A stretch of DNA of 64,000 nucleotides from Tubulanus polymorphus. Lineage: Eukaryota > Animalia > Nemertea. Location of the stretch: assembly GCF_964204645.1 (NCBI RefSeq), contig NC_134032.1, positions 11,768,275 through 11,832,274 of the forward strand, read 5' to 3'. Within the stretch, counting starts at the first letter, position 1. Every line of letters begins with the position of its first letter. The notes under the pieces are model-generated. The model ran no database searches and had not been told where the DNA came from. It was given only the letters and a program-made list of their open reading frames with translations. The position numbers were made by a program, and so were the translations under genes. Shown in pieces: positions 3,652-56,086 of the stretch.

Positions 3652-4304
3652 GTAAGAATTTGCCGTTCGGTAGTCCCGCGCCAACTTTCTACTTAACTCA
3701 AAAAGGTTGGGATAATACTGTTCTGCAGGGTGCGGTTCCACAGTTCCGATTTAAGATTTCACTCTTGGGTTAGCTCATTGAAAATGAACTAACTTTAACT
3801 CAAGAGTTTACTCTTAACTCACAACTGTGGAATTGGGTCCAGGTCCTATTTCATCTTGATACAAAAAAATGGATAGACTGTGATAGACTGTTACTCATCT
3901 CACTGTTAAACAGTCTAAAACGAGGCCCACTTGCGCGAAAAATTCAGATTTTTGGTTTTATTGCTCCAACTGTTGTTGTTGTCTTACCGATTCAAGCTTA
4001 AACTTTCATGAAACCATACCCCTGTCCTAGGTCGACTGATAAAGTGAAGATTAACTCAAAAATGTCGATATCAACTGAAATTATGAAGAAATTAGGTCTC
4101 GTAAAGAAATAGATAAGTAAATACATTGAGCCTATCAACACCAAAGTGGTGCTAAACCGCTCTAGGCAGATCGGTTTTAAAGATAACTCAAAAAATTCCA
4201 TACGTCTTTCCCTTCTTATCAGAACAAATGAAATGTTATGAAAGTTGAGAGTTCTCTCTGATAAAACTGGTTTATTTCTCACGTCTGTCTGTTTATTCTT
4301 TCAG

Positions 4305-4392
4305 GGGTCGACAGAATCTTCGCGTACGTGAACACAATATACTCGGGCCTTACGTAGATGGACTGTCTCAATTAGTGGTAGAATCATACGAG
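4305..4392 (+). CDS. KIF13: KIF13 exon (GRQNLRVREHNILGPYVDGLSQLVVESYE)
   Basis: ctttcag|, |gtttgt; LRVREH-GPYV motif. Confidence 0.95.
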
Positions 4393-5050
4393 GTTTGTTT
4401 TATACCCCTTAAACTGAGGGTCCTAACACAGTCCCCTAGACCTGAGAACACTTACTCTCCCCTTAAATTGGATTACAAATCCTTACACTGTCCCCAAAAA
4501 CTTAGAACAGTTATTAGAACAGCTCTTTAACTGGTGAACCCTTTCACAATCCCCTAAAACTCAGAACGCTTTGAGCCTGAGAATAACTTAGTGTTCCTAA
4601 CAATTCCGTTAAACCTCGAGTTCCCAAAAACCTGAGTACACTCTTCAGTGTTCTTTACCATCCCCTAAAACCTAAGACCCTATGTACATTAAACCATGGA
4701 ACCCTGTTCATTGTCTGTAACAGTTCCATTAAACCCGTGAGTGACCCTTCAGTCCACTAAAAACTGTAGAACCTAGGATATTTTGTAGATCACACAGGGC
4801 ATCAGTATGTTTGCTCTATTGGTTTAGTTACCAATCATCACTGAAGGTGGCAGCAGCTCCTTGTTAAGATAGTTAAGCAATAACTGTTTGGATGCAGGGC
4901 CAGTTCCACAATTCTCAAGTTAAAATCAATCGCAATTCTCACCTTCTAAACCTCCCAACTTGTATCCCGATATTTGTTATTGAATATAACCTACAGTACT
5001 GTTAATTTTGAATATAACTGACTGCATTGTTGTTTATATTTCGTTGGTAG

Positions 5051-5185
5051 GATATAGAAACGTTGATGGTAGAAGGTAATAAATCGCGTACGGTCGCCGC
5101 GACGAACATGAACAGTGAAAGCAGTCGTTCACACGCTGTATTTAACATTATACTAACACAAACTATGGTGGATGTCACAACCGGG
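5051..5185 (+). CDS. KIF13: KIF13 exon ([45 protein letters not shown]), switch I
   Basis: ggtag|, |gtaag; SSRSH. Confidence 0.97.
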
Positions 5186-6149
5186 GTAAGTAATCGAGAC
5201 CCACGCCCCCTTACCTATGCCATATGAACCTCAACGCACGCGGCAAGGATAAAGCCGTTTATTCCCCATGAAAAACGTATCCGATGCATTTTGTTATGCC
5301 ATGTGCGTTGAGGTCGAAACAGAAAATGCCGAACATAAAAACGTTACTGCTTGATTCGCGGAAAATGCCTTGTGACGCTGAAAACATTTTTTTGTCCCGT
5401 ATGTGTTGGATGTTCGTAGATCATGTTCAACATCTACGGCTGAATAACCAATCAGGGAGCATCAGTGCATCACATGAAATGAGAGAAAATTTGATATGAA
5501 TAACTGAGTGTATTGTTGCACCATAGATTCAATGGTACAAGAACCATTTTTTCTACGCGGTTTTGTTATGCCGTGTGTGTTGAACATTTTATCGTTTGCG
5601 GTAAAACTTTTGCTAAAGTCATGTTTTCTGTTTTGATGCACCAAATGTTTTGTTGTGTGCATTTGGCTTTATTGAAGCCGCTGAAATAGATACATTTACG
5701 TGTGGTCATTCGATCCATCTACTGGTATGTGACCGTCAGAGGCATCGCATTTGTGATGATTCAGCCATGTTTTAAGTGAAACTAGGAGTGTTTGAAAGTT
5801 GTCACTCGGTCAGAGTTTGTATCGATGTTAATATTCTTCAGACTGAGTTCATCGTAGATGATTAAAATCAATTGTGTTTTAAACAAGAAAGTAATGCAGT
5901 ATCATTGGTTCAATTATGTTTAGAATTGATCACAGCATTTGGCCAAATTTTGGTTCTTGCACATGTATCCAATGGCTTGCTCCAAATATCCAAATAAAGG
6001 CATACGGAGTCATCCTTTACTGTATCATTGTAGCTCTGGGCTTGCTCAGCGTTGGTTGAGAATATCCATCATGGAAATTTGGTCCGAGTTTCTCGAATAG
6101 AAGAATTTCTCAAGAATGATAGAATAATTGATAACATATTTTTTTACCA

Positions 6150-7568
6150 TAATCAAAACATTGAAGAATTTATTTACATATCAAAAAGTCAGCATCAATT
6201 TATATAATAACTTGTTACGCGCTCACGATAAAGAGATTTATCGCTCGAAAATTTACACACCAATTTTACACATATCAAACAAACGTTGCAATATCGCGAT
6301 AGTGATGAAAAATCTTATTTACAATATATTACAATGACATTTTAATTTTGCACTAGTTTCAAATCTATCTGACTCAGTCTGAATCTCTGTAAATATGCAA
6401 ACCAACTTATTTACAATTTAGAAAATCGTTTTTCTCAAGTTCTAGACGCAGAGTGTAGATGGCAGTACTGGCAAGCTATTCTCCATCTTCTTGTACTTTC
6501 TGCAAAGTGGATTTAACTACATTAAAAAGTATATTTAGATATTACGTACCTAAGCTGAAAATTCTGGCAAGCTTGGCCATCCAATCACAGCCCCCTGTGA
6601 CACAACAATCACAGGTCAGAGGTAGTCGGGCCGCTTATTTGAACTATTTTTCCTATGTCTACCTCTTATGCAAACTCTACTCCAATTGAACATAATAAAT
6701 ACATTTTCCTTACGTCGGTCGCACAAGGCTAAAATATAGCTAAGATATCGAGGAAAATGTGGCAAAAATAACCTATTTACAATGTATTGTCTTGTATTAT
6801 AACTAAGCTCATTGCTCTCAATAGATAAATATTTGTTGAATACCGGGTATGTTTTTTATTTTACACAATGTACACTTGTCTACTGTTCACTTTTCTCTCA
6901 CATCCATATAGGCGTCACGCTCACGGATCTTGATATTAATTAGTTATCCACTCGTAATCAGCCACTTCAACAACAGCAATTGATAGAAACAGTGAATTCA
7001 GTTCCACAGTATGTTCGACTCTACAGACTAATGCTGTACAGACTAATTAACCCGCTGTGACATCTCAAATTTTCACATTTAAGAAAGTTGAAGGCGAGGT
7101 GTAGGTCGACCTTGCGACTGCGCGAGACTTGTTTCTCTGCAACTACCGGCAGCAATCCTGTCGCGAAGAACCACCAACCTATGTGCTGTTGCAACGAACA
7201 GGGATGTGCTGCCAGTGACATTTCTATACACTCTTGCTCCTGACAATGATATGATGCCATTTCCAGTGACATCTTCTACCTTCTGCGATGTGCCTGTCTC
7301 ACTATTGCTGCCACATGCGACCAGTTGCGACCAGTTCTTACGAACCATCTTTAGTCGACCTACACCTGCCTTTACCAATAATCATTTTGGGGCAGTTGCT
7401 CAAAAGTTGGTTTAAGCTAACCGGTGGGTGAATACTGTAGTAACAATGGACTTTAAATCATCGCTACGTCAACTATCCAGTAGCTTACTCTTACCAACCT
7501 TTGAGCTGCTCGCGTCAACTGAACCTATTCGCGATGAATTTTATTAAACTATTAAGATGATAGTTAAA
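6150..7568 (-). other. Probable 3' UTR of nested gene with AATAAA signals
   Basis: Minus-strand AATAAA (plus tttatt) at 7540-7545, ~6855 and 6169-6174; AT-rich UTR-like composition. Confidence 0.4.
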
Positions 7569-10370
7569 TCATAATCTGGTATGAACGATGCCTTCCTCCT
7601 CCGATATATAAACCGTTTTACCGTTTACTGTTTTCGTTAGATCCGGCTGCTCGGTCGATCCGTTCTTGCTATGTCCGTTCGACGACGTCGTTTTATCCAG
7701 TTTACCGTTCGATTTTGTATTTCCGTTCTCGCCGGCGCCGTCTCGAGGTTCGATTTTAACGAAGTGTTTCAGGAAGACGTCTCCCTCGCCGTGTTCCTTG
7801 ACGCGTCGGTCGGCGACGTAGTCTTTGATTTTACACCCGATACAGATCAGCGGTCCGATTATAATCCAGAATCCGACGATCGAACAAACGACGATCGCCG
7901 CGATGAAGCCTCGACTCGCTCCGGCGACAACCGTCGAATTACGCAATACAGTGTTATTGGTCGCTGTGTCGCTGGTTATTGTCGGACTGGTTGCCATTTT
8001 AGTGGTTATTGTCGGACTGGTTACCGTGTCAGTGCTTGTCGGACTGGTTGCCATGATATCAGATTTTGTACTTGTTCCAATGGTACTACTATCAGTAACT
8101 AAGATATCGTTTGTCGGGTTCGCCCTGGTATCATTAGTTGCTATTGCGTCCGGTATTGTTGATCTGGTTGGTATGGAACCATTGGTTGCCCTAGTGTCCA
8201 ATATTGTAGGACTGGTTGTTCCATTAGTTGCCATACTGTCCAGTGTTGTAGGACTTTCGGCCGTTGTACTATTGGTTACCGCCATTTTAACGGTTCCGGA
8301 AACATTAGTCACGTTGGTTCTAGTAGATGCCGTATTATCCATTGTTGTAGAACTGGTTGCTACGGTACTATTAGCTTCGGTGGTATCAGTTGATGGGCTC
8401 ATTACGGTCTCATTAATTGCTGTAGTATTTGATATTGCAGTACTGGATGCAATGGCAATATTGGTTGGTATGGTATCTGGAATTGTAGGACTTGTTGCTA
8501 TGGTACTATTGATTACCACGGTATCTGGCATCTTAGTACCAGTTGTTACAGTCATATCAGGTGGGGTGGATCTAGTCGGATTCGAGACAGGTTTTTTCGT
8601 AATTTCGGTGACGTTCCTCAAATAAGTATTATACACATGTTCAGTTTGATTCAGCGTTTCACCGCTAGACGGAGCCGCCGTTGTTGTTATGGTTAGATTT
8701 TGGGTCAACGCTTGTTTTCGATCGGTGTTAATTATCGAATTATCGGTTTGTTCTTCTGCAGCAACGGTAGTTATTGGACGTGCTGTAACGTTAGTAGCTA
8801 ATTGCGTAGTAGCGATATTTGTCGAGGTCGCGATATTTTCAGATTCGCCGCCGTCCTCATCCGATGATGATATATTTACCGTCGCCGCGAGACCGCTCCC
8901 GACGTCGTCATCAGTTTCATCGATCGATCTGACTTTAACGAATTCGTCCGATCCGCTGCCGCCGTTTGTTTTTTCGACACTTTCTATTTCTTCCATCAGG
9001 GGGGCGTTCATTACTTTCTCCTCTGTACTGCGTTTCCATCGGCTAGTTCGTACTTTCTCCACCAGGGGGATATTCATCATTTTCTCTGTATTGCGCTTCT
9101 GTCTGCTTGTTGCAATTTCCACCACTAGAGGTATAACACTCTTCTGAGCGCTCACTTTCCGTTTGCTAATTCCGACTTTCTCCACCAGGTGTAGATGTTC
9201 CTTTTGCACGTTTCTATTCAGCCCACTCGTTCCGATTTCCTCCACCAGGGGGACACTGTCTACAATCGTCTCGCTACCCGACTTCGCTAAATTAGATTTG
9301 ACGTCGGCGTTTTGTTTGTTGCGATTATTTTTCTTCGCCTCAGCACGACGCGAGGAATTCACCCGTCTGTCCTTTAATCTCTGCTCCGGTGTCTGCTCCA
9401 GTTTCTCCTCCGACCGACTGCCACCGTCTTCGCGATAATACGTCTTATCGTTCGGAATTCTCGGTAACCGGTCGATATTTTTCGCGACGTCGCGGATGTT
9501 TGCCGTGTCTGATGAAATTCCGGCCTCGTTCGTTCGCCGCCGCCGCGATCTACGGATACGATCCGGTTTCGCAATCTTTCTACCCGCATCGGATGTCCAG
9601 CGATCGTCTAACTGACCGCCGGTCACTTTAAGACCTCCACTCAGGTTGACCTCTCGTTTTTCATCTGTCGTTATAAACTTATCGGTTGATTTTACTGGCG
9701 AACGTAGATAAGACTTGGGCACTTGATACTGACCGCGGTTATCGATGGTAGCCAACTGACCGCTGTCCATGAACGAGTGTTTGCTGTCCGCTATCGATTG
9801 ACCGCTGTCCACTGCTGACAAGCCATTGTCCTTTATAAACTTTTCGCTGTCCGTTACTAATTGGCCCATGTCCACTACCAACTGACCCCTGTCCACTACT
9901 GACTGATCACTGTCCTCTATTGGCTGACCACTGTCCACTACTGACTGACCGATTAAGATATAGCCGATTTCCTCTAGTTTATTGGCCATACGATTAAACG
10001 AACTCAATGCCTGCAGAAACTTCAACACCGACGGATTAAACCTGGCTCTACTCCTCGGCGAATGTTTGACAGAATCATAAACACGTTTAAAATCGTTCGA
10101 GTCTTCGTTTGCGTTATTCCAATTAGCGTTAATTGATTTCCGATCGAAGTTTCGTTTGAATGCGGCTTCGATATTCATTTGTTTTACGGAATCGCGATTG
10201 TTTGTTAACAATGCGCCGCTGATGGTGTTTGTATCAGCGGTATCTCGGGGAAGCGATGAACTCCGGGCCGAGTCGATCTCGTCTCTGGTTACGGGAAATG
10301 AAATCGTTAGTTCGACGACGCACAGTAATAAGATCGTCAGCAGATACCAGTTCGTAAAGGTCGTCGACAT
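7569..10370 (-). CDS. Nested antisense gene: 933-aa type I membrane mucin/proteoglycan-like precursor with C-terminal PDZ-binding motif
   Basis: 2.8-kb uninterrupted ORF in otherwise stop-rich intron DNA. It has an N-terminal signal peptide (MSTTFTNWYLLTILLLCVVELTIS), RxRR/RxKR sites, a Thr/Ser-rich stalk with many NxT/S, a TM segment GFIAAIVVCSIVGFWIIIGPLICIGC followed by basic KIK, and ends ...EEEGIVHTRL*. A minus-strand acceptor (tattttcag) lies 17 nt before the ATG. Confidence 0.88.
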   Translation of the reverse strand: MSTTFTNWYLLTILLLCVVELTISFPVTRDEIDSARSSSLPRDTADTNTISGALLTNNRDSVKQMNIEAAFKRNFDRKSINANWNNANEDSNDFKRVYDSVKHSPRSRARFNPSVLKFLQALSSFNRMANKLEEIGYILIGQSVVDSGQPIEDSDQSVVDRGQLVVDMGQLVTDSEKFIKDNGLSAVDSGQSIADSKHSFMDSGQLATIDNRGQYQVPKSYLRSPVKSTDKFITTDEKREVNLSGGLKVTGGQLDDRWTSDAGRKIAKPDRIRRSRRRRTNEAGISSDTANIRDVAKNIDRLPRIPNDKTYYREDGGSRSEEKLEQTPEQRLKDRRVNSSRRAEAKKNNRNKQNADVKSNLAKSGSETIVDSVPLVEEIGTSGLNRNVQKEHLHLVEKVGISKRKVSAQKSVIPLVVEIATSRQKRNTEKMMNIPLVEKVRTSRWKRSTEEKVMNAPLMEEIESVEKTNGGSGSDEFVKVRSIDETDDDVGSGLAATVNISSSDEDGGESENIATSTNIATTQLATNVTARPITTVAAEEQTDNSIINTDRKQALTQNLTITTTAAPSSGETLNQTEHVYNTYLRNVTEITKKPVSNPTRSTPPDMTVTTGTKMPDTVVINSTIATSPTIPDTIPTNIAIASSTAISNTTAINETVMSPSTDTTEANSTVATSSTTMDNTASTRTNVTNVSGTVKMAVTNSTTAESPTTLDSMATNGTTSPTILDTRATNGSIPTRSTIPDAIATNDTRANPTNDILVTDSSTIGTSTKSDIMATSPTSTDTVTSPTITTKMATSPTITSDTATNNTVLRNSTVVAGASRGFIAAIVVCSIVGFWIIIGPLICIGCKIKDYVADRRVKEHGEGDVFLKHFVKIEPRDGAGENGNTKSNGKLDKTTSSNGHSKNGSTEQPDLTKTVNGKTVYISEEEGIVHTRL

Positions 10371-10387
10371 TTTAGCATCCGTTCTTT

Positions 10388-10410
10388 CTGAAAATAGACG
10401 AAATTCGTGT
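10388..10410 (-). promoter_or_regulatory. 3' splice acceptor in the 5' UTR of the nested gene
   Basis: Minus strand reads gaatttcgtctattttcag|aaagaacggatgctaaaATG. Confidence 0.6.
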
Positions 10411-11057
10411 GAAATTTTGTTCGCGTTTTAACCAAGTACTTAAAGAACTAAGTCTGATGGTGTAGAGCTTATAGTTCAGTTCCTGAATCCAGAAAAAATT
10501 GAGAATTGTTGAGTTGATTGGGAGGGGTTTGATTGAAAAAGAAGACAGGGGAGAGATGAGATGAGATTCAAAACAGTGACTCATGGAGAGATGACAGAGA
10601 GAGAGAGAGGGGTTAGGGAGTAGGGTTAGGTAGGCGCGAAGGAGTCGGCGTTCACCATACGCTGGAATTTTCAAGGGGCTGCATTCATTGTTAAGCGTGC
10701 GTCATCGGGCTGCTTAAGTAACTAGGCTTTCAATCCCGCCAAAAAATACAGAAACTTGATTTCAGTTTCGCTTCTTTTTCTAGTAGGGGCAGCAGATATT
10801 CTATAAGGGGTGGCTGATTTTCAAAAGGGTGGTGTAAAAATGAAAAGGGTGGCTGCCCCTCTGAACGCCGGAAGTTCATTGCGTAATGCAGCCATCATCA
10901 GAAATCAACACGGTACAACACATAAATATATAAAGCGGTAATTTATAAATAGGTACATAAAAGAGCCGGAAAGAGAGAGGAGAGATTTGATCAATTTAGG
11001 TGATTAGGTGACATTCATCCAAAAAATATAAGGCTGTGGGAAAATAAACGAATAATA

Positions 11058-11708
11058 AATGATTATTGATGTAGGTAGACTATCTGTACGTACTGACAAT
11101 AAATGTTTCACCAGATTATCACAGGTTATTTAAGTTTGAGTTGTTTAAACTTATGAAACGAAAACCTTTCAGTACGAGATGGATTCGCGGGGATTCCCTG
11201 TTCAATCATAAGGGTTTCTACCGAAAAACTTTCAAAATCCAGTCCAGATTATCACAGGTTATTTTAGTTTGAGTTGTTTAAACTTATGAAATGAAAACCT
11301 TTCAGTATAAGATGGATTCGCGGGGATTCCCTGTTCAATCATAAGGGTTTCTACCCAAAACCTTTCAAAATCCAGTCCAGATTATCACAGGTTATTTAAG
11401 TTTGAGTTGTTTAAACTTATGAAATGAAAACCTTTCAGTATAAGATGGATTCGCGGGGATTCCCTGTTCAATCATATAGGTTTCTACCCAAAACCTTTCA
11501 AAATCCAGTTCTACAGTTGTGAGTTAAGGTAATTGAAAATGGACCAAGGCGTGTTAAGAATAACCCCAGACTCTAGGGCTCAACGATCCTGGATTCCGTC
11601 AGGGGTTATTTGAGTTATCCTCATTATACTACAGTGCCAAAATGTGATAATCTGGTGAAACATTTATTGTCAGTGCGTACAGATAGTCTACCCACATCAA
11701 TAATCATT
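11058..11708. repeat. 66-bp inverted repeat (11058-11123 / 11643-11708) bracketing a 3 x 133-bp tandem (11111-11509)
   Basis: aatgattattgatgtaggtagac...ccagattatcaca vs tgtgataatctgg...catcaataatcatt; tandem units start 11111, 11244, 11377. Confidence 0.85.
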
Positions 11709-12424
11709 CAAATCTCCATCCCCGAAGACAAAGAGGAGAGGTTGTAAATCCTGAATCTAGGATTATGTAACTGCACTGGGCGTACAGATGTTCATAGCAG
11801 TTGCGTCATTACTGTAACAATCCATACATGGTATCAGTATGTGGTGTCTATATCTGTATCCTATCCCAGCCAATTAGTATCAGACTCTTGAGAAATGTCA
11901 GATTCTGCAATGTTAGAATTAAGGATTCTTGATATCCGGTTTATGCAGATGCCAGGCTTCCTTGTAAAGTTTTGATTGACTCCTCAATCCGTGGAACTGG
12001 GTTCAGAACCAATATTCGCCACACTTTATCTTTAAACGTAGAGACCGCCAATTAGCAGAAGTTGTCGACCACAAATTTCCTATTTTCCGCAGAAAACCCT
12101 TGACTTGAATTTCGAGTCCTTTTTTATTTCTCGTAAAAATACTCCCCGGTACTGGATTTATTTGTTTTAATTAGCAGCAGGTGCTGATGACCCGGGACAC
12201 AGGTGCGCGGAAACCCACCTCACTTTATTTTGTTTACTCAGAATGCGTCTTTGAAATGAGGATTAGTCAGAATTGTAAACGGCGCCTGTGAATCACGACT
12301 TCAAAAACACCGATCATTTTTCATCATGAATTAGAAAAAAAACACTTTAAAAAGATTTTTACATCTTTTGCACTCCTAGGTTTGACTTTTTGAGATTCGA
12401 CATTCAATAACTTCAACAACACTT

Positions 12425-12765
12425 CAGTAAAGTTATGTTTGAAATTATGATGAGTTACGGATGATGACCTTATAATCGATGACTTCACTGATTCAGTAAA
12501 ATTATGATGAGTTAACTGATGATGACCTTCTCATTATCAATGAGTATCACAATTCAATAAAATTATGATTAGTTACTGATGACGACCTTCTCATTCTCAA
12601 TGACTTCAATGGTTCAGTATAATTATGATTAGCTACTAAATGATGACCTTCTCATTCTTGGCGACTCCAAAATTATGATAAGATACTAATGAACGACCAT
12701 TTCATTCTAAATTCAGTTAGATTATGATTAAAAAGATTTTGATTAGTTACTGATGACGACCAGCT
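12425..12765. repeat. Degenerate ~56-bp tandem repeat
   Basis: Recurrent aattatgat(g/t)agttactgatga(t/c)gacctt(c)tcatt. Confidence 0.75.
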
Positions 12766-13985
12766 GAACGCGGGTTCGCCTAGAAACCACTGCGGATGCA
12801 GAAAATTCCTCAAATTCCCACGGGATTCGCAGTTTTTACCCCCATTTTTTTTCCACTTGATGTTCGATAGCGTTTATTTATTGTGTTAATATTTTCATAA
12901 CCCAGCCACACATCTCTCTTCTCATTTATTGTAAATCTCAGTTATTAGTTGTCAGACATACAAACGTACGTACGTATCATCATTGCCTGCTTATGGCGAG
13001 AAGTTCAGATCGGTTCAGACCTCATGAGAAGTTGACCCGAAGTCTGCGCTTTTGCGAGGCACTTATATTATTATTATGAATGAGTTGAAGATATCATAGA
13101 CATCGTAGGTTTAAAAACGAGTCCCGTAAAGATAGGGGAAGAGCGGAGAAGGGTGTGGAACAAAGACAACCATCTGTAGATGTTCATGAGAGAATACTGT
13201 TGCGAAATCTAGACCATTTCCCTCACTCTGCCATGACACAGTTTCAAAATAAACTTTCATCTTAAAAATCAAAAAAAGATTAAAAATTGATATTGATCCA
13301 TATATGCACAGTCGCGCGCTTACGTATTTTTAATATATTCGTACATGTGGTTGTTTAGACGTACGTCGCGCTGCGGCAGTGAGAGAGCTGGGAGAGGTGA
13401 TACGACTGGGGGCCAATTTTTATTCAACGTTAAACACTCTTGAGCTGTGCCAGAACTAAACCCTATCCCTAATTCTTTGCATATATGAAATTATAAATCA
13501 TTTCTTGCGGTTTATTTTGAGAACATTTCTCGCGATACGGCGTGATACGAAATGTTACATAGACAATGAAAACAGTTCGTATTATTTCAAGTTTGTGTCA
13601 TACATCAAGTATTTCCTGGCCCTGAGGGCCATGTTTGAAATCAGTACAGTGAGGGCGAGGAACAGAGCGGGCCTAGAATAAAAATCAAATTTCTCCCAAT
13701 AAATTTCTTCAGATGATGTGTTAAATGATGTTGAGAATAAACGAATTATTCGACGAATATAGACGGCCCATATTGGCCTTACCACTGAGGTATCCAGAGA
13801 ACTAGAAAGTATGTGATATTGTCATCAACTCAATTAGAAATGAACAACAGTTTTAATCACTTGGAGTTGCTACATTTTTGCGGTTGCGAAGTAAACAACA
13901 GTTAATTGCTATTTTTATTTCGAATTTCGGCGTTAGCCGGCAGAAGGCAGGATGTGTAGGTGGATTAAAGGGAATATAGAATTAA

Positions 13986-14258
13986 CCCTTCCAGTGCGGT
14001 GTATGAATCGGTGATGGATTTTGCGAGTACACCGCACTGCGGTGTATTGATTTAATTAGTAATTAGTAATTATCTCTCTTGAAAAATGGCTGCACCTGTC
14101 AAACATAGTGAAATATTAGAAAACTAACGATACACTGCGCCGCTGTGTAGACGCACTATAGTGGTATTCGCGTTATTAAACACACTAAGGTGGAATTTTT
14201 CAAAATTTTCAAATTATCTTCAGCACTATAGGGTATTGATTAGTCAGCACTGAAAGGG
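13986..14258. mobile_element. piggyBac-type MITE copy 1
   Basis: TTAA TSD, TIR CCCTT(T/C)CAGTGC...GCACTGAAAGGG. Confidence 0.85.
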
Positions 14259-14929
14259 TTAACTCGGTGATGATGAGGACCAAGCTGTCATGTATATACT
14301 GTCTAGTCAAGTGTAAATCACTAAAAACTTGTTGGTCGCTCAACTGCCAATCGGAAACATACATTTCAAGCATAAGCAAATTTCAGTGAATTTTGTCTCG
14401 AATAGATGAAGAAGTCGCACGTATGGTAGAATTTATACGAATGAAATCACGATGTTTCAGCTATTGCTACCATCAATTAGACTGACCAGGAACAGCTCAA
14501 ATGTCGAGTCGAGAATCAGGGAAAAGATTTCGATTAGATCGGTACCCAGTAAAGAGGTGATTCCTCCGCCGAATTCTTCACCTCACCTTTCTACCCGTGG
14601 GACCTCGTTACAGCGGGGACCAGAAAATCTGTTTCGTTAAAACGAGGTTTGACTGTTGTAGTACATTTTCAGTTGCGCTTAAAAAAAAGCTGATCCAAGG
14701 AGTAATTGGCGTCTCTCCAAATCATACAAACAAGTGAATATATCTGGAGCATCAAAAGATACAAAGATTAATTTTGTTAACATTTTTCTCGTAAAGGTTT
14801 ACGAAAAGCAAGGCCACGTGCGGATTGATATTTTTGTTTTTGCGATGCCCTCCTTATTGTGTTTAGGTTTTGGCTAAGATCTGTCTCGATATTTCGTTTG
14901 AAAATGTCGCCCACCCATTCTATCGTAAA

Positions 14930-15350
14930 GGACCCCCAGTTCTACGGTATTAGGTACAAAAATCGTTACCTCGCTGAACCATATCTAGAGCCCAGTTCTA
15001 CAGTTATGAAAAAATATGCAAACCTTACCAAACCACGATTTAGAACCCAGCAGTTCTACAGTTAGGTACAAAAAACCTAAACCGTACCAAACCAAATCTA
15101 GAACCCAGTTCTACACTTTCGTACAAAAATTCAAGCCTTACCAAAACAACTGAAGAACCCAGTTTAGTACGGCTGTTGTTCCAAGTGAACTTTCTGTCTT
15201 AAGTGAAATTATTTTGTAATTTCTTACGTGTACGAACCCAGTTCTACCGTTCTAGGTATAAAAATTAAAACCCCACCAAACCAATTCTAGATCAGAGTTC
15301 TACAGTTACGTAGAAAAATCTAAACCGACTCTAGAAACCCAGTTCTGCCA
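14930..15350. repeat. ~55-bp degenerate tandem repeat
   Basis: Recurrent cccagttctacagtta(g)gtacaaaaa...ccttaccaaacca..tctagaa. Confidence 0.75.
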
Positions 15351-18300
15351 ATAAAGTTGTGACGTCTACCAACGCTATTCCGGTTCATAGGCGCAAAAAT
15401 TCCAATTTTTACGGACAGAACGCGATTTTTTCCTTCAGTTCCGGGGAAGAAAGATTTTTGAGAGCTGTACATAGCGATGCCCCCTGCTGGTTACTGATTA
15501 CGTTAATTCTTACAGCAACTGAGCGATAAAAACTAAAAAACTAACGTATCAAGGTTAATACCTCGCCGGCAGCCACTGCGAGGGGCCTCATACTTAAAAC
15601 ACTTGACCAAAATCCTCCTTTTTTACTCGCGCAGCGGAGTTTTAGTAATTATATCAACTTGTCTAATTGTGATGCTATTATTGTAACATATTGTGCGAAT
15701 TCATTGTAGACTGTTCGATGATTTGTTTTGACTGGGTCGGATCATTGAGACCTGATATTTATATCATTTGGCCTCCCTATCTTCCTCCTCTAACCTCCCT
15801 CTCTCCTCCCCTCCTTCCTGCCCACTCTTTTTTCCTGTCTTCATCCAGGGAGGTCACCTTGCTTCATCTAACTGCCTTTCCTTCATTTCCCCATTATGTC
15901 TCCATCTCCTATCTAGGCCCATATGCAGCTTTTTTTGGGAGGGTGAATATAGGTCAGGTGGGTTATCATTTGCCGGAGTGAAGCTTTTTTGGTGGGTTCG
16001 GTAGCCTCAAAAAGAAAATTCTTAAAATTTGGAACGTTAAAGATGCATTTCTCAGCTAATTTAAGAAATGTTGTAAGTAAAAAACAAACGCCGCACTGTG
16101 CAGGACAATCAGTGATGGTAAAATCTGTAGTCTGAACATTTGTTTTTTATATGATATGGCAGGATTTTGGGCGGGATGCATTCCCCTGGGCATGAGCCTG
16201 CTGTCCTCACTCGCACCTAACCTCTTCATTTTAAGACTTTTTAAGACTTTTATCTCCCTCTTTCCTATGTCTCCACCCATTTCTCATTCATGTAACACAA
16301 ATTCAGCTAATTTGCTGCTATAAACACATAGACCTTTACCGTCAATTGCATGTGATGAGATACAATCAGATAATTCAAACAAAGACCAGTCAATCATAAC
16401 TCGTGAACAGATAGAGGGGCTAAAAGTCTAACAAATCATGCCCACTACAAATGTATAAACCGCAATTATTCGAATCACCGGTGAAATTATCAGGATGTTT
16501 TCGCAGCAATTAGAAGCGTCGATTTCGGCGTTATTTTCGCGTCTAGGATTTGTTTTAGGTGTCCTCATCTAAAACAGCCGACGAGCGGGTTTCACCCGGC
16601 GGGCGTCGGTGCGCGCGTACCATTTCCTGGAATATTAATCGACCTGATTTCGTAGTGGAGAATGAGTGGAGAATGAGGCGAGCGCGAATGGTATTTCCTC
16701 ATTAATTCACAGTTATATAAATAATCGTATGAAACCCTTTCTGTAAAAAGAGCGACTCGCGCAGGCGCGGAAGGAAATCTAACCTCACGCGCTGTGGGGA
16801 AAATATGACATTTCAAATTCGCTTCTACTTCTACGGAAACGTATTTTTGTATATTTCCGAAACTCTCTCGTATCTTATGAGTTCACACGAAAAAAAGATA
16901 ATATTTTTGTTAATTCTTTTAATTGGTTCAAGCGACGAAGCGCTTCTACTTAGTCGGCCGAAATCCAAAATCGAGAAAAATATGACATCGTGAATTCATA
17001 TGCGCGGGCTTTTGGCGAGAGTTGGGAAAAAAATTTTTTTGTTTGTTTTAAAAATCAAAAGAAGTTTTTCATTACCCCGCCCCTAATAAATCTGCCATAC
17101 AACAGCAATTTCAGGTTTTAGATTTTTTTACATGAACTGAACTACTTTTCCACGTTTTTAGCTGTTGTTGAAATGAAAATCATCTCGAGTGTCGAACATT
17201 GACTCTATTTGCTATTCGAGCAAACAAATACTTCTTGATCCCCTTACCCCCCAATAGAGATGGACAAAGAATTTTCAGTCCAGTTCAAAGGAGGAGGGGG
17301 GTTGCTTATTGCTTATTTATCAGTCCCGTACTGGTTAGGATTATCACATCTGTCGTGAGATAAGGATAAACTCTGGTTGACTGGTAAATGGGTTTATCAG
17401 CGCGATAACGAAAACAATTTATCCAAAACCATCGCAACAAGTGAAAAATATCGACAATCAGAGTTAGAGTTGAAAAGTATTCGATTACTGTCGGTGTGCC
17501 CCTGAAATCACCTCTGGAGTCATCAGTCACCTCATTAAACCGGAGATGATAGTCGAAAATAAATTCGTAAAGATTTTTGTTATCAGCGATATTGATACTG
17601 GTTATAAAATCAGTGACAAGGAAGAAAGATTGTTGATTTGCGTAGAGCGGCGTGTGGATTTATGAAGTGTTTAGATTAAGATGCACTTTGAAAGTACATT
17701 TGAACTGCGGTAATCAGAACCCTCATTACACGAGCACGCGATCATTTTTGGCAGGGGCCAAATTTGGCCTGGAACAACTGTTCACACGGGTGCCGAATAG
17801 ACCCCCTGCAAATTTGGCCCGACCCAAATTTTAGCTCCAGTCAAATGATTGCAGGGTCCAGTTCCGCAGTTCCGAGTTAACTCATTGAAAATGAACTAAC
17901 TTTAACTCGAGAGTTAACTGTAACTCACAACTGTGGAACTGCGTCCTCCGGGGGGTATAGAGCGGTGTGATAAGCCCTATATATAGACTGTAGCTATGTA
18001 CGGTTGGTTACTGATGCAGACTTTGAGTATGTGAAAATGTAGGTCTCTCATGTCGTATTATGGTCTCGATACAACAGCCATTACGGCGAGAGAGAAGCGC
18101 AAAAAATGTTCTCTCCGCGCGTTGTTGTCGGCGGAGAAAAAAAATCGAATCACAATCTGTAATCATTAATGAATTCTGTACGTCAGAATTTCTATTGTTG
18201 TTGATTTCGGTGTAGATGATTAGTTTTCATATGCGCTGGCTGTATATAGAATGGAACAGTAGATATATCTCTAAATTACTGGTATCAATTAATTTTCTGA

Positions 18301-20590
18301 ATTTTTTTAATTAAGGCTTGGCTTTATGATAATAGACCAGATCTGGTTCTACAGTTCGGCATTCATATTTGAATATCTATGTACAAATATCTCTAAATTT
18401 CTGGTATTAATTCATTTTCGGATTTTTTTCAATCGAAACTCAGTTTTATGACAGTTGATCGGACCCTGGTCCTAAGTTCGGCGTTAGAATTTGAATGTTC
18501 GTACAAATTATAATTCAGAGTTGATTATAACTTACGATGTATGGAATTTGGCCCAAAATTCGACTAAAGTTTTGTTTATAATTAGATTCTAAGAGTTCAG
18601 ATATTTGAAGAATAACTTTTCAATTCTATGGAGTCGATTCTTACGACTGCGGCCCCGGGTCCAGGGTTATTAAGCGATTAGTAGGCCCTGATTTCATAAA
18701 AATAAATTACAAACTCAACTGGCTTCTAGCCCAGGTTCGAGGTATAATTTCTCCATCTCAATCTAGTCTTGAGATTTAAAAAAAAAAAATTGAGAATAGC
18801 TAGAAGAAAGTATTCGTAAAAAGTTCTACCTACCTAATAAACTAATGATTCGATGATTAAAGTTTTGTCTTTGTTTCCGAGCTTTCCTTCGATGACGGTA
18901 ATACGATAGATTACGAAACAATTTTATCCGATCCTCGAAAAACTTTCTCTAAACTTTCGAATCATCTCAATATGAGGATATAGATCCTACTTCTGCTGTC
19001 GTCCTATGCGACTGGCTGTGACTGGCTGGCTTCGGTGAAAATATCTCGGGAAGAAATATTTGTGAACTATTTAGTGAAACCCCGCTGCTGACAAAAGGGA
19101 TATCTGCGATTTACAGAGTGTGTTCTGTGATTCTGAGCACTGACACACACGCCGTACCAGTACTGGTTTACGCTATAGTAGGTGGGCCGGCTACATTTAC
19201 GTATCTACCAATCATATCGTTCCTTTCGTCGGGCCTGCTGATGTCTCACCGATGTCTATAGAAATATGCGATTTCCTGAAAATCCTAGAATTCGTTCCTA
19301 GAATTTTGATTAGTAATTATAAGCCAGGAATTAGGTCATAACGGACGTGAGAATTGCGATCCAGTTCCGGCAGTTGGGTGTTAAGTTTAACTCTTTAGTG
19401 TTAAATAAGTAAATTTTGGCGGCACAGAGTCATGTTTAACTGATAATGTGGCACCAATTCTGCAGTACCCTTAAATTTTTTTGTCTTGAAATATGGATTG
19501 TCCCTGTAATTTATTTGGTCGGAAGATTTTGTCCGATTTGTTTCGATTCGATGTCCCTTACAAACCCCACACCTGCCAGCAATGAAAAAGGGGGGTTGGA
19601 TTTTGAAGGCAGAAATCGAAGGCCAGTCACAGTTGTGTGATAATCCGTCCAGAAATCACTGGCCCCAAAAAATAATGAGGTAAAAACGCACCATATACAG
19701 ATTAAAAGTTCTAAGATCGAGAATTTATTCAATCAAAAATTCAAAAATAGATATTTTCGTGTCTTTTTAATGAATTTTTGATCAATTTAAAACTTCTAAT
19801 CTGTATATAGTTCGTTTTAATCTTATTATTTGTTAGGACCAGTCATTTCACCAGTCAGGTGATAACTCTATGTAAGACAATGGAATTCATTTCACATTCT
19901 GTTGCAATGGTTCTAAGATCTTTGTTTGAATAATTCAGCTTGAAGGCATTCGGGGGGGGGGGGGGAGGGGCGGAGTTGGTCTACTGCACTAAGATTATAT
20001 CTTTAGAACAGTAGGCCCTTATTTTGTATTTGTTTATTTATGAATGTCGTTGTCATTGTTTTGCCGCCATTTTTTTTAAGCTTCTACGCGCGTACAGAAA
20101 AATTCTTCGTAGAAATATGGCCATCCGTGCTGATGGCTTTTGACCGCATTGGATGAGAAAAATGGGGTTATCACCGGTTTATCAGTGGTTTACCCGGGCT
20201 AATCGCTTGTGTGACTGGTTAATTAGGGTTATCAGGTGTGCGCTGTGGAGGTCAGGTGGCCTTCGTCAGAAAAAATTCTCTTCTCGGAGAATAATTCAAA
20301 TTGACGCATCATGCCGATGGAGGGTTGGAATAGAAAGAATTTTATGTGAAATGCTGAATTTGTGATTTACCAAAAAAAAAGTGATAAGAAAAATTTCGAA
20401 AAATTATTTTCATATTTCGGACTTCAAACTGAAAAAAAACTGAAAACTGAAAAATTAAAATTGATCATCAGAGGAAATTTCACTTTTGAGATCTTTGATC
20501 GGTAACTTCACACTTGATAGGTGTTAGATGTTTGTTCGATCATTTAGTTAATACCTTTATTAAATTTTCGTTTTTCACGTGTAATTTCAG

Positions 20591-20703
20591 GTGACCGGTG
20601 AAAAAGTGAGTAAAATGAGTCTGGTTGATTTGGCCGGCAGCGAACGTGCTCAGAAAACGGGTGCAGTCGGAGAAAGATTAAAGGAAGGAAGCAACATCAA
20701 CAA
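20591..20703 (+). CDS. KIF13: KIF13 exon ([37 protein letters not shown]), switch II
   Basis: tttcag|, |gtaag; DLAGSE. Confidence 0.97.
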
Positions 20704-21401: not shown

Positions 21402-21488
21402 TCTCGTGATCGCAAACATTTTTTCGAATGCAACGTGTTTGATAGGATGATTTGAATTCAACTGTTAGCATTGTTGTCGTTTATGCAG

Positions 21489-21701
21489 GATAATCTGGGC
21501 GGTAACAGTAAAACGGTGATGGTCGCCACGTTGAGTCCGGCTGCCGATAATTACGAGGAGACGCTGTCGACGTTGAGGTACGCCGACCGCGCGAAACGTA
21601 TCGTCAACCACGCCGTCGTCAACGAGGATCCGAACGCGAGGATTATCAGAGAACTTCGCGAGGAGGTTGAGGAACTGAAAACACAGTTGAATATGGCACA
21701 G
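21489..21701 (+). CDS. KIF13: KIF13 exon (DNLGGNSKT...[27 protein letters not shown]), motor end/neck coil
   Basis: Within ORF 21471..21707; tgcag|, |gtatg. Confidence 0.97.
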
Positions 21702-21952
21702 GTATGATAATAGAGGGCGCTTGTAGTGGGTTAGTTTATTGCGAATGATAATAGATGGCACTTGTCGGGGTCAGTCCAGAATGCTTCTTGAATATCTACT
21801 TGAATCTGGTTTTATGGACTAGTTTTAACTTTTAACTTGCCTCAGGGGTTAAACTTTAAAAGTCTTAAGATTTACACCCCAAGATACTTTGTTGGGTCGT
21901 GCAGGGGTAACATTAAGAAAATTGAAAAATGAACCTAATTTTTTGATTCTAG

Positions 21953-55976: not shown

Positions 55977-56086
55977 GACGTGTGTGAACGGTTCTAGCAT
56001 AAATAGTAAAACTAAAGTGAAACATGGCGACCGAATTATTTGGGGAAACAATCACTTTTTCCGCATAAACTGCCCGAACGCGAACA
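55977..56086 (+). CDS. KIF13: KIF13 exon (TCVNGSSINSKTKVKHGDRIIWGNNHFFRINCPNAN), FHA end
   Basis: ttgtag|, |gtaag. Confidence 0.96.

Follow-up and report, generated by a model that had tools for sequence, protein, structure and literature searches.

Members of the CD34, podocalyxin and endoglycan group combine a mucin ectodomain with a single transmembrane (TM) helix and a tail ending in D-T-x-L, which binds the PDZ domains of NHERF proteins. In syndecans (PF01034), which are type I proteins, a disordered, variable and glycosylated ectodomain leads into a highly conserved TM segment; the stretch next to the membrane and the PDZ-type end of the tail are conserved as well, and the part between them varies. 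Among the membrane mucins of vertebrates, EVI2B is encoded by a gene that lies nested in antisense orientation in an intron of the large gene NF1. In this study we describe a locus in the nemertean Tubulanus polymorphus that resembles these systems in build: an open reading frame (ORF) of 933 amino acids (aa) on the minus strand of a 64,000-nucleotide (nt) stretch of DNA, hereafter the window (NCBI RefSeq assembly GCF_964204645.1, contig NC_134032.1, positions 11,768,275 to 11,832,274 of the forward strand), situated inside an intron of a kinesin gene. Our analysis suggests that this ORF is probably an independent coding gene, nested antisense in a motor-domain intron of a KIF13-like gene, and that its product is a type I, disordered and heavily glycosylated surface protein belonging to a small family that has not been described before.

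The ORF occupies positions 7569-10370 of the window as one exon (933 aa plus stop) within an open frame of 952 codons and, just as the initial annotation of this stretch had reported, it runs antisense to the kinesin between the exons that encode switch I and switch II. The composition-based probability of 933 codons without a stop is about 4e-23, and the longest open frame obtained in composition shuffles of the ORF region has 228 codons. The second-longest open frame of the whole window, with 267 codons, is an antisense low-complexity frame over the same ORF. The gene is single-copy in the 268-Mb genome, and a repeat scan found neither long terminal repeats (LTRs) nor terminal inverted repeats (TIRs) bracketing it. 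A transposon origin thus finds no support.

Transcription of the region is documented by two runs from the same sample. In run X2, RNA contigs cover 7655-8943, 8914-9103 and 9128-10212 at depths of 20-38, while no contig lies on the flanking intron at 6200-7599 and none on the kinesin exon. Such coverage on the ORF but not on the flanking intron favours a transcription unit of its own over a retained intron. Parts of the ORF are also covered in run X3, at depth 10-15, and the kinesin exon is present there too. Run X5, dated 2015 and presumed to be RNA, placed no contig here, even on the kinesin exon, and is therefore uninformative. RNA contigs over the ORF thus confirm that the region is transcribed, which the initial annotation had proposed to check. 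As contigs carry no strand, we infer a minus-strand transcript from the ORF itself, from the signal-like N-terminus of its product and from an AATAAA hexamer 24 nt past the stop codon. The X2 contigs also run on weakly, at depth 4-10, to about 10706.

The alleles seen in RNA differ from the window by about 1%. None of the listed allele differences creates a stop codon, and the one 3-nt indel keeps the frame. Nine of the 26 differences listed are synonymous and 17 are non-synonymous, giving a ratio of non-synonymous to synonymous differences per site (pN/pS) of about 0.58 (ratio of non-synonymous to synonymous sites, 3.26). Two irregularities in the contigs were considered as structural features and rejected: an apparent splice at 7670 is an in-frame 3-nt deletion allele (7667-7669), and a 30-nt loose end at 9128 is an allele that carries a variant of a P-L-V-E-E-I repeat absent from the window, so that the basic zone of the protein varies by one repeat variant.

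The host intron is delimited by spliced RNA. A 3628-nt contig of X3 aligns to 5049-5187, and its loose ends match exactly 4361-4390 and 20593-20622. The contig thus joins 4390 to 5049-5187 and the latter to 20593, which shows that X3 is RNA and that the host intron is 5188-20592. The plus-strand kinesin exons on its two sides carry switch I (SSRSH at 5120) and switch II (VDLAGSER at 20624). Further downstream, the exon at 21471-21707 finds KIF13B as its top match among solved structures, with 118.7 bits versus 86.4 for KIF1A and 83.8 for KIF14, and an FHA-like motif lies near 56002 on the plus strand. The kinesin exons were searched one by one, so that the KIF13 assignment is one of single exons and not of a joined model. 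On these matches the host appears to be a kinesin-3 of the KIF13 type.

The predicted protein has the anatomy that had been proposed for it, as judged by hydropathy and by a single-sequence AlphaFold2 (AF2) model: a signal-like start, a Thr/Ser-rich stalk full of sequons, one TM helix with cysteines and a tail of about 87 aa that ends in EEEGIVHTRL (Table 1). The mean predicted local distance difference test score (pLDDT) of the AF2 model is 37; the helix at aa 811-860 reaches 54-66, and values above 60 occur in the TM helix alone. Together with the pLDDT of 25-33 over the stalk, this mean is the ground for predicting disorder; the Atlas model has a pLDDT of 0.39. Seventeen of the 20 N-x-S/T sequons of the protein fall within aa 499-815, and the content of Ser plus Thr is 14-25 per 50 aa over aa 500-800, a composition that suggests dense glycosylation. 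Cysteines occur at 17, 829, 843 and 846 alone, and the ectodomain is therefore without them. Within the basic zone, two of the five P-L-V-E-E-I repeats end in R-x-K-R sites of furin type (RQKR and RWKR). The SG candidates comprise GGSGSDEF, DDDVGSGL and four or five of the D-S-G-Q repeats, with no visible conservation in the two relatives described below, and the idea that the acidic SG sites carry glycosaminoglycans is speculative.

The evidence that carries the argument for a family comes from an exhaustive HMMER search over 1.84 billion representatives, which returned 15 hits including the query. Of the 14 others, 12 (P0002-7, P0009-11 and P0013-15) match the V-D-S-G-Q repeats alone and were rejected as relatives, being repeat look-alikes of unrelated build (transporter-like, protease, zinc-finger). 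The remaining two were found through the membrane region, namely P0008 (873 aa, JGI metagenome 3300040954, locus L003) and P0012 (564 aa, ENA ERZ23491132, locus L004). When the C-terminal parts are compared in pairs by BLASTP, the values are 2e-19 for the window protein and P0008, 3e-15 for the window protein and P0012, and 7e-22 for the third pair. What the three proteins share is a module of about 70 aa (alignment A1), in which an RN(S/E)T sequon lies about 20 residues N-terminal to a core, F-W-I-I-x-G-P-L-x-C-x-x-C-(K/R)-(I/M)-(K/R)-D, and (D/E)(K/R)R comes a few residues after it; the core and the basic juxtamembrane part are common to all three, and Cys 843 and Cys 846, at the cytoplasmic edge of the membrane, are invariant. 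Across the 70 codons of the module pS is 0.79-0.89, that is, saturated, and pN is 0.41-0.49. Saturated synonymous sites with a lower pN indicate that the lineages separated anciently and that the module is under purifying selection. Outside the module the likeness fades quickly. The ectodomains are unalignable and have different lengths and types of repeat, the called N-termini of P0008 and P0012 show no signal peptide, and the tails (66 and 122 aa in P0008 and P0012) cannot be aligned past the juxtamembrane part. All three tails nevertheless end in T-x-L, as HTRL in the window protein, KTEL in P0008 and DTNL in P0012; position -3 varies (H, K, D), and the probability that both relatives would end in T-x-L by chance is about 1e-5, given the composition of the tails. 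The C-terminal motif is thus retained in both relatives though the rest of the tail is not alignable, and the finding of an unconserved tail motif, which the initial annotation had named as a refutation, did not arise.

Other searches were consistent with a family that has no name. Protein searches by word index, made with the full-length sequence and with residues 815-933 and 25-500, gave no match but the protein itself among the matches listed, two of them having saturated at 8000 low-complexity candidates, and Pfam hmmscan at E up to 1 assigned no family to the whole protein or to aa 800-933, and none to P0008 and P0012 save a sub-threshold MtrF hit on the TM segment. A profile search of the PDB with alignment A1 gave no match. 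Among JGI metagenome contigs, 179 pattern matches were obtained with A1 and none was confirmed, and a 17-codon degenerate pattern gave 0 matches, though L003 itself was not recovered by this approach either, so that the negative carries little weight. A search for contigs on record that encode the window protein likewise found none. These searches bear out that the protein, which the initial annotation did not recognise as any named one, has no named family, and the suggestion that it may be lineage-specific holds in part, since at least three deeply diverged members are now known. As far as can be judged from the sequences, the window protein, P0008 and P0012 are members of one undescribed family, which the RN(S/E)T and FWII.GPL.C..C module defines.

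The position of the gene is conserved as well. On L003 the P0008 gene (plus strand, 213-2834) is followed by a kinesin switch I exon on the opposite strand at 5948-6088. This exon has 76% DNA identity with the switch I exon of the window, which is the sole nucleotide-level match between the two loci, and its acceptor and G|GTAAGT donor fall at the same positions as in that exon. In both loci the mucin-like gene has its 3' end towards the switch I exon, at a distance of about 3.1 kb in L003 and 2.4 kb in the window. The comparison with a relative that the initial annotation had called for therefore places P0008 in the same KIF13-like intron as the gene in the window, likewise antisense to the kinesin and next to a switch I exon whose splice positions are identical. 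The saturation of synonymous sites implies that this nesting is old. L004 reaches 1.46 kb past the stop codon of P0012, too short a distance for synteny to be judged. The kinesin introns of L003 also hold three copies of a dispersed element (3788-4029, 5421-5645 and 7130-7261) with an ORF motif like HWKALEEHFLM.PLVF.FNHF.

How does this family compare with the systems described at the outset? The likeness to syndecans covers the whole order of parts, from the type I build and the disordered, variable ectodomain to the PDZ-type end. A feature-based comparison of the TM segment and tail finds the neurexin/syndecan-type tail cluster as nearest neighbour, with a score of 0.90 that serves as a lead only. 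There are also differences: hmmscan finds no PF01034 match at E up to 1, the FWII.GPL.C..C core is not of the GxxxG type, the C-terminus is T-x-L (class I) and not EFYA (class II), and the tail, at 66-122 aa, is much longer. Membership among the syndecans was rejected, given the missing PF01034 match and EFYA end. With CD34 and podocalyxin the protein shares the mucin-like ectodomain and the single TM helix, and P0012 ends in DTNL, the D at position -3 being found in P0012 alone. It differs from them in having no Pfam CD34_antigen match, no cysteine-bonded globular domain, no ectodomain cysteine at all and no folded domain in the AF2 model. Homology to this group was likewise rejected, as there was no Pfam match and none of the 15 HMMER hits was such a protein. 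The likeness to podocalyxin and syndecans that the initial annotation had noted is accordingly one of build and not of descent. The same can be said of the vertebrate membrane mucins (MUC1, MUC21/22, MUC15, TMEM154 and EVI2B), which are alike in overall build and are the nearest language-model neighbours of the whole protein and of its TM segment plus tail, with scores of 0.83-0.90 that are leads only. Neither a Pfam domain, be it SEA, Epiglycanin or another, nor HMMER homology links them to the window protein. An SEA-type mucin (MUC1, 3, 12, 13, 16, 17) was rejected because there is no Pfam SEA match and the region before the TM helix is disordered. By comparison, P0008 and P0012 have the sequon and the FWII.GPL.C..C(K/R)(I/M)(K/R)D module in common with the window protein and, like it, end in T-x-L, and P0008 shares the nested position beside the same kinesin exon as well.

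We regard a class I PDZ ligand as the likeliest meaning of the conserved T-x-L: HTRL, KTEL and DTNL, each at the free end of a tail that follows the TM helix, all fit the class I motif x-(S/T)-x-hydrophobic. A 14-3-3 mode III site seems a weaker alternative, the upstream Arg not being conserved. The parts of the protein suggest a mechanism of the following kind. The protein would enter the secretory pathway, where furin-type convertases might cut it in the basic N-terminal half, and its stalk would form a glycan brush at the cell surface. The two cysteines at the membrane edge may be palmitoylated, and the conserved TM segment may associate with itself or with a partner. A class I PDZ scaffold of the NHERF kind, or a similar one, would bind the C-terminal T-x-L, and the protein would thereby be fixed in, or sorted to, a membrane domain, as podocalyxin or syndecans are. 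Cleavage, glycosaminoglycan attachment and palmitoylation are suggested here by motifs.

Several observations weigh against this interpretation of the locus. The RNA contigs carry no strand information, and they end at 7655 and 10212, short of the start and stop codons. The within-species pN/pS is just mildly below 1 and is based on 26 of 51 differences. There are two relatives only, both on metagenome contigs, and neither called ORF starts with a signal peptide, L003 being cut by the contig end with a frame break at about 213 and L004 possibly having an upstream exon. A Thr at position -2 would also suit a 14-3-3 mode III site. No PDZ partner was found: a search of this genome for the C-terminal domain of NHERF (EBP50_C) was blank, but its control set was blank too, which makes the search uninformative.

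Among the other explanations of the locus, the one that survives best, though we regard it as unlikely, is that the protein is a processed precursor, whose N-terminal half is cut at RRSRRRR, RQKR and RWKR into secreted fragments or repeat peptides while the stalk, TM helix and tail serve for sorting and anchoring. In keeping with such a role, aa 264-466 contain three sites of the R-x-(K/R)-R type together with five P-L-V-E-E-I...K-R repeats, and in P0012 too basic residues are clustered (SRRRNRNKKRTR) upstream of the TM segment. However, the repeat zone is not conserved with either relative, no hit of the exhaustive search falling there, and it varies between alleles, whereas the constrained parts of the protein are the TM module and the C-terminus; the cleavage itself is predicted from motifs alone.

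The initial annotation had raised the possibility of a motor-cargo pair, in which the nested glycoprotein is carried by its host KIF13 through a PDZ scaffold, Dlg or NHERF, and co-regulation keeps the two genes nested. This proposal can draw on the conserved class I PDZ-type motif and on the retention of the nesting in the same KIF13 intron across a divergence at which synonymous sites are saturated. It has also been shown that GAKIN/KIF13B binds Dlg through its MAGUK-binding stalk (PMC2064238). Yet conserved nesting is expected from structural constraint alone and needs no functional link; the simplest account of it is that relocating the nested gene would tend to disrupt the host. The expression data hint at independence, as the nested gene was assembled in X2 at depth 20-38 with no contig on the kinesin exon, while X3 has both, contig depth being a poor measure of expression. 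Nested genes such as EVI2A, EVI2B and OMG in NF1 have long been retained with no known functional link to the host. Moreover, Dlg PDZ domains favour a C-terminal Val, Leu being more typical of NHERF ligands, and NHERF is not known to be linked to KIF13. A literature search on a nested gene in KIF13 brought up nothing relevant. Taking these points together, we consider carriage by the host motor quite improbable; the fuller version, in which gene and host form an ancient functional unit, the glycoprotein being sorted by its host motor through a scaffold that reads T-x-L and the nesting coupling their expression, is hardly more credible.

It is more improbable still that the transcript acts mainly as an antisense regulator of the splicing or expression of the host kinesin, with the protein secondary. 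An antisense position in the intron, itself conserved, would suit such a role. Against it, conservation lies at the protein level, in the module, the frame and the C-terminal residues, while synonymous sites are saturated, no nucleotide similarity is found outside the kinesin exon, and the transcript overlaps no kinesin exon. The least probable explanation, that of a chance, decaying or transposon-borne ORF in a low-complexity intron with RNA from read-through or noise, would accommodate the missing Pfam family, the low-complexity composition with its strong AT skew, the antisense frames of 143-266 aa over the same DNA and the modest within-species pN/pS, but is contradicted by the length of the ORF with its signal-like start and its end near AATAAA, by a single-copy locus without terminal repeats whose RNA coverage tracks the ORF rather than the intron, and by homologues that share module, C-terminus and position across saturated divergence.

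If the locus is an independent gene for a surface glycoprotein, as we think probable, the family can be defined by a compact signature consisting of the conserved TM core, the two cysteines at the membrane edge and the C-terminal T-x-L. The locus adds an old and conserved case of antisense nesting within a motor-domain intron, and the nested position can serve as a marker for orthologues in other invertebrate genomes, where the ectodomain is too divergent for sequence search. As a class, a single-pass glycoprotein with a PDZ-type tail is ordinary; only the cargo link, if true, would make it remarkable. We speculate that the FWII.GPL.C..C family could be a widespread and overlooked invertebrate counterpart of the syndecans.

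Table 1. Features of the nested gene, its predicted product and its host intron, in window coordinates
Feature	Position	Strand	Basis
Complete coding sequence, 933 aa + stop	7569..10370; stop 7569-7571	-	open frame versus chance; single-copy
AATAAA, 24 nt past stop codon	7540..7545	-	sequence
Signal-peptide-like N-terminus, aa 1-24, core LLTILLLCVV, T-I-S before likely cleavage site	10299..10370	-	hydropathy (aa 5-29 hydrophobic), AF2 helix 2-24; cleavage inferred
Tandem heptad-like x-V-V-D-S-G-Q repeats, aa 141-213	9732..9950	-	Tandem Repeats Finder, period 21, 4.1 copies at 9865-9950
Strongly basic region (aa 264-466) carrying RRSRRRR plus five P-L-V-E-E-I...K-R repeats	8973..9581	-	sequence; repeat family D6
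Acidic stretch with SG dipeptides (GGSGSDEF, DDDVGSGL, SSSDEDGGESE), aa 468-512	8835..8969	-	sequence
Thr/Ser-rich mucin-like stalk, aa 499-815, without Cys	7926..8876	-	composition; pLDDT 25-33
Conserved family module, aa 810-872: RNST sequon, TM with FWIIIGPLICIGC, juxtamembrane KIKD....DRR, then FLKHFV	7755..7943	-	BLASTP, alignment
Predicted TM helix, about aa 821-846, Cys 829, 843, 846	7833..7910	-	hydropathy, AF2 helix 811-860
Cytoplasmic tail, about 87 aa (aa 847-933), ends EEEGIVHTRL; unalignable past juxtamembrane part	7572..7832	-	sequence
C-terminal H-T-R-L, class I PDZ-ligand-type motif	7572..7583	-	sequence
Host KIF13-like exon with switch I (NSESSRSH), just before host intron	5049..5187	+	spliced RNA contig
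Host intron, 15,405 nt, holds nested gene	5188..20592	+	X3 contig joins 5187 to 20593
Next host exon start, switch II (VDLAGSER); 5' part only delimited	20593..20680	+	motif, X3 contig

Several minor features surround the nested gene. At its 5' end, a TTTTCAG lies 17 nt upstream of the ATG (minus strand, 10371-10400) and may be a splice acceptor of the 5' untranslated region, and a short, out-of-frame upstream ATG overlaps the start of the ORF. Farther 5' lies an element resembling a miniature inverted-repeat transposable element, with 66-nt inverted arms at 11058-11123 and 11643-11708 that are 97% complementary; the arms overlap three tandem 133-nt units (11111-11509). Dispersed repeats flank the gene on both sides, as seen in X1, a DNA-like run, in which the summed contig depth is about 1050 at 5800-5999, 100-300 at 7200-7599 and 330-400 at 10600-10999, versus about 22 elsewhere, and in which many contigs break at 10692-10833. 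Elsewhere in the genome, a locus at G000:C1:31622257-31622655 (L002) matches the V-D-S-G-Q zone (aa 97-233) at 29% and contains three stop codons, and is either a decayed repeat ORF or a chance likeness. In the same kinesin intron as the nested gene, diverged units of about 60 nt (families D3-D5) form an array at 12438-12761.

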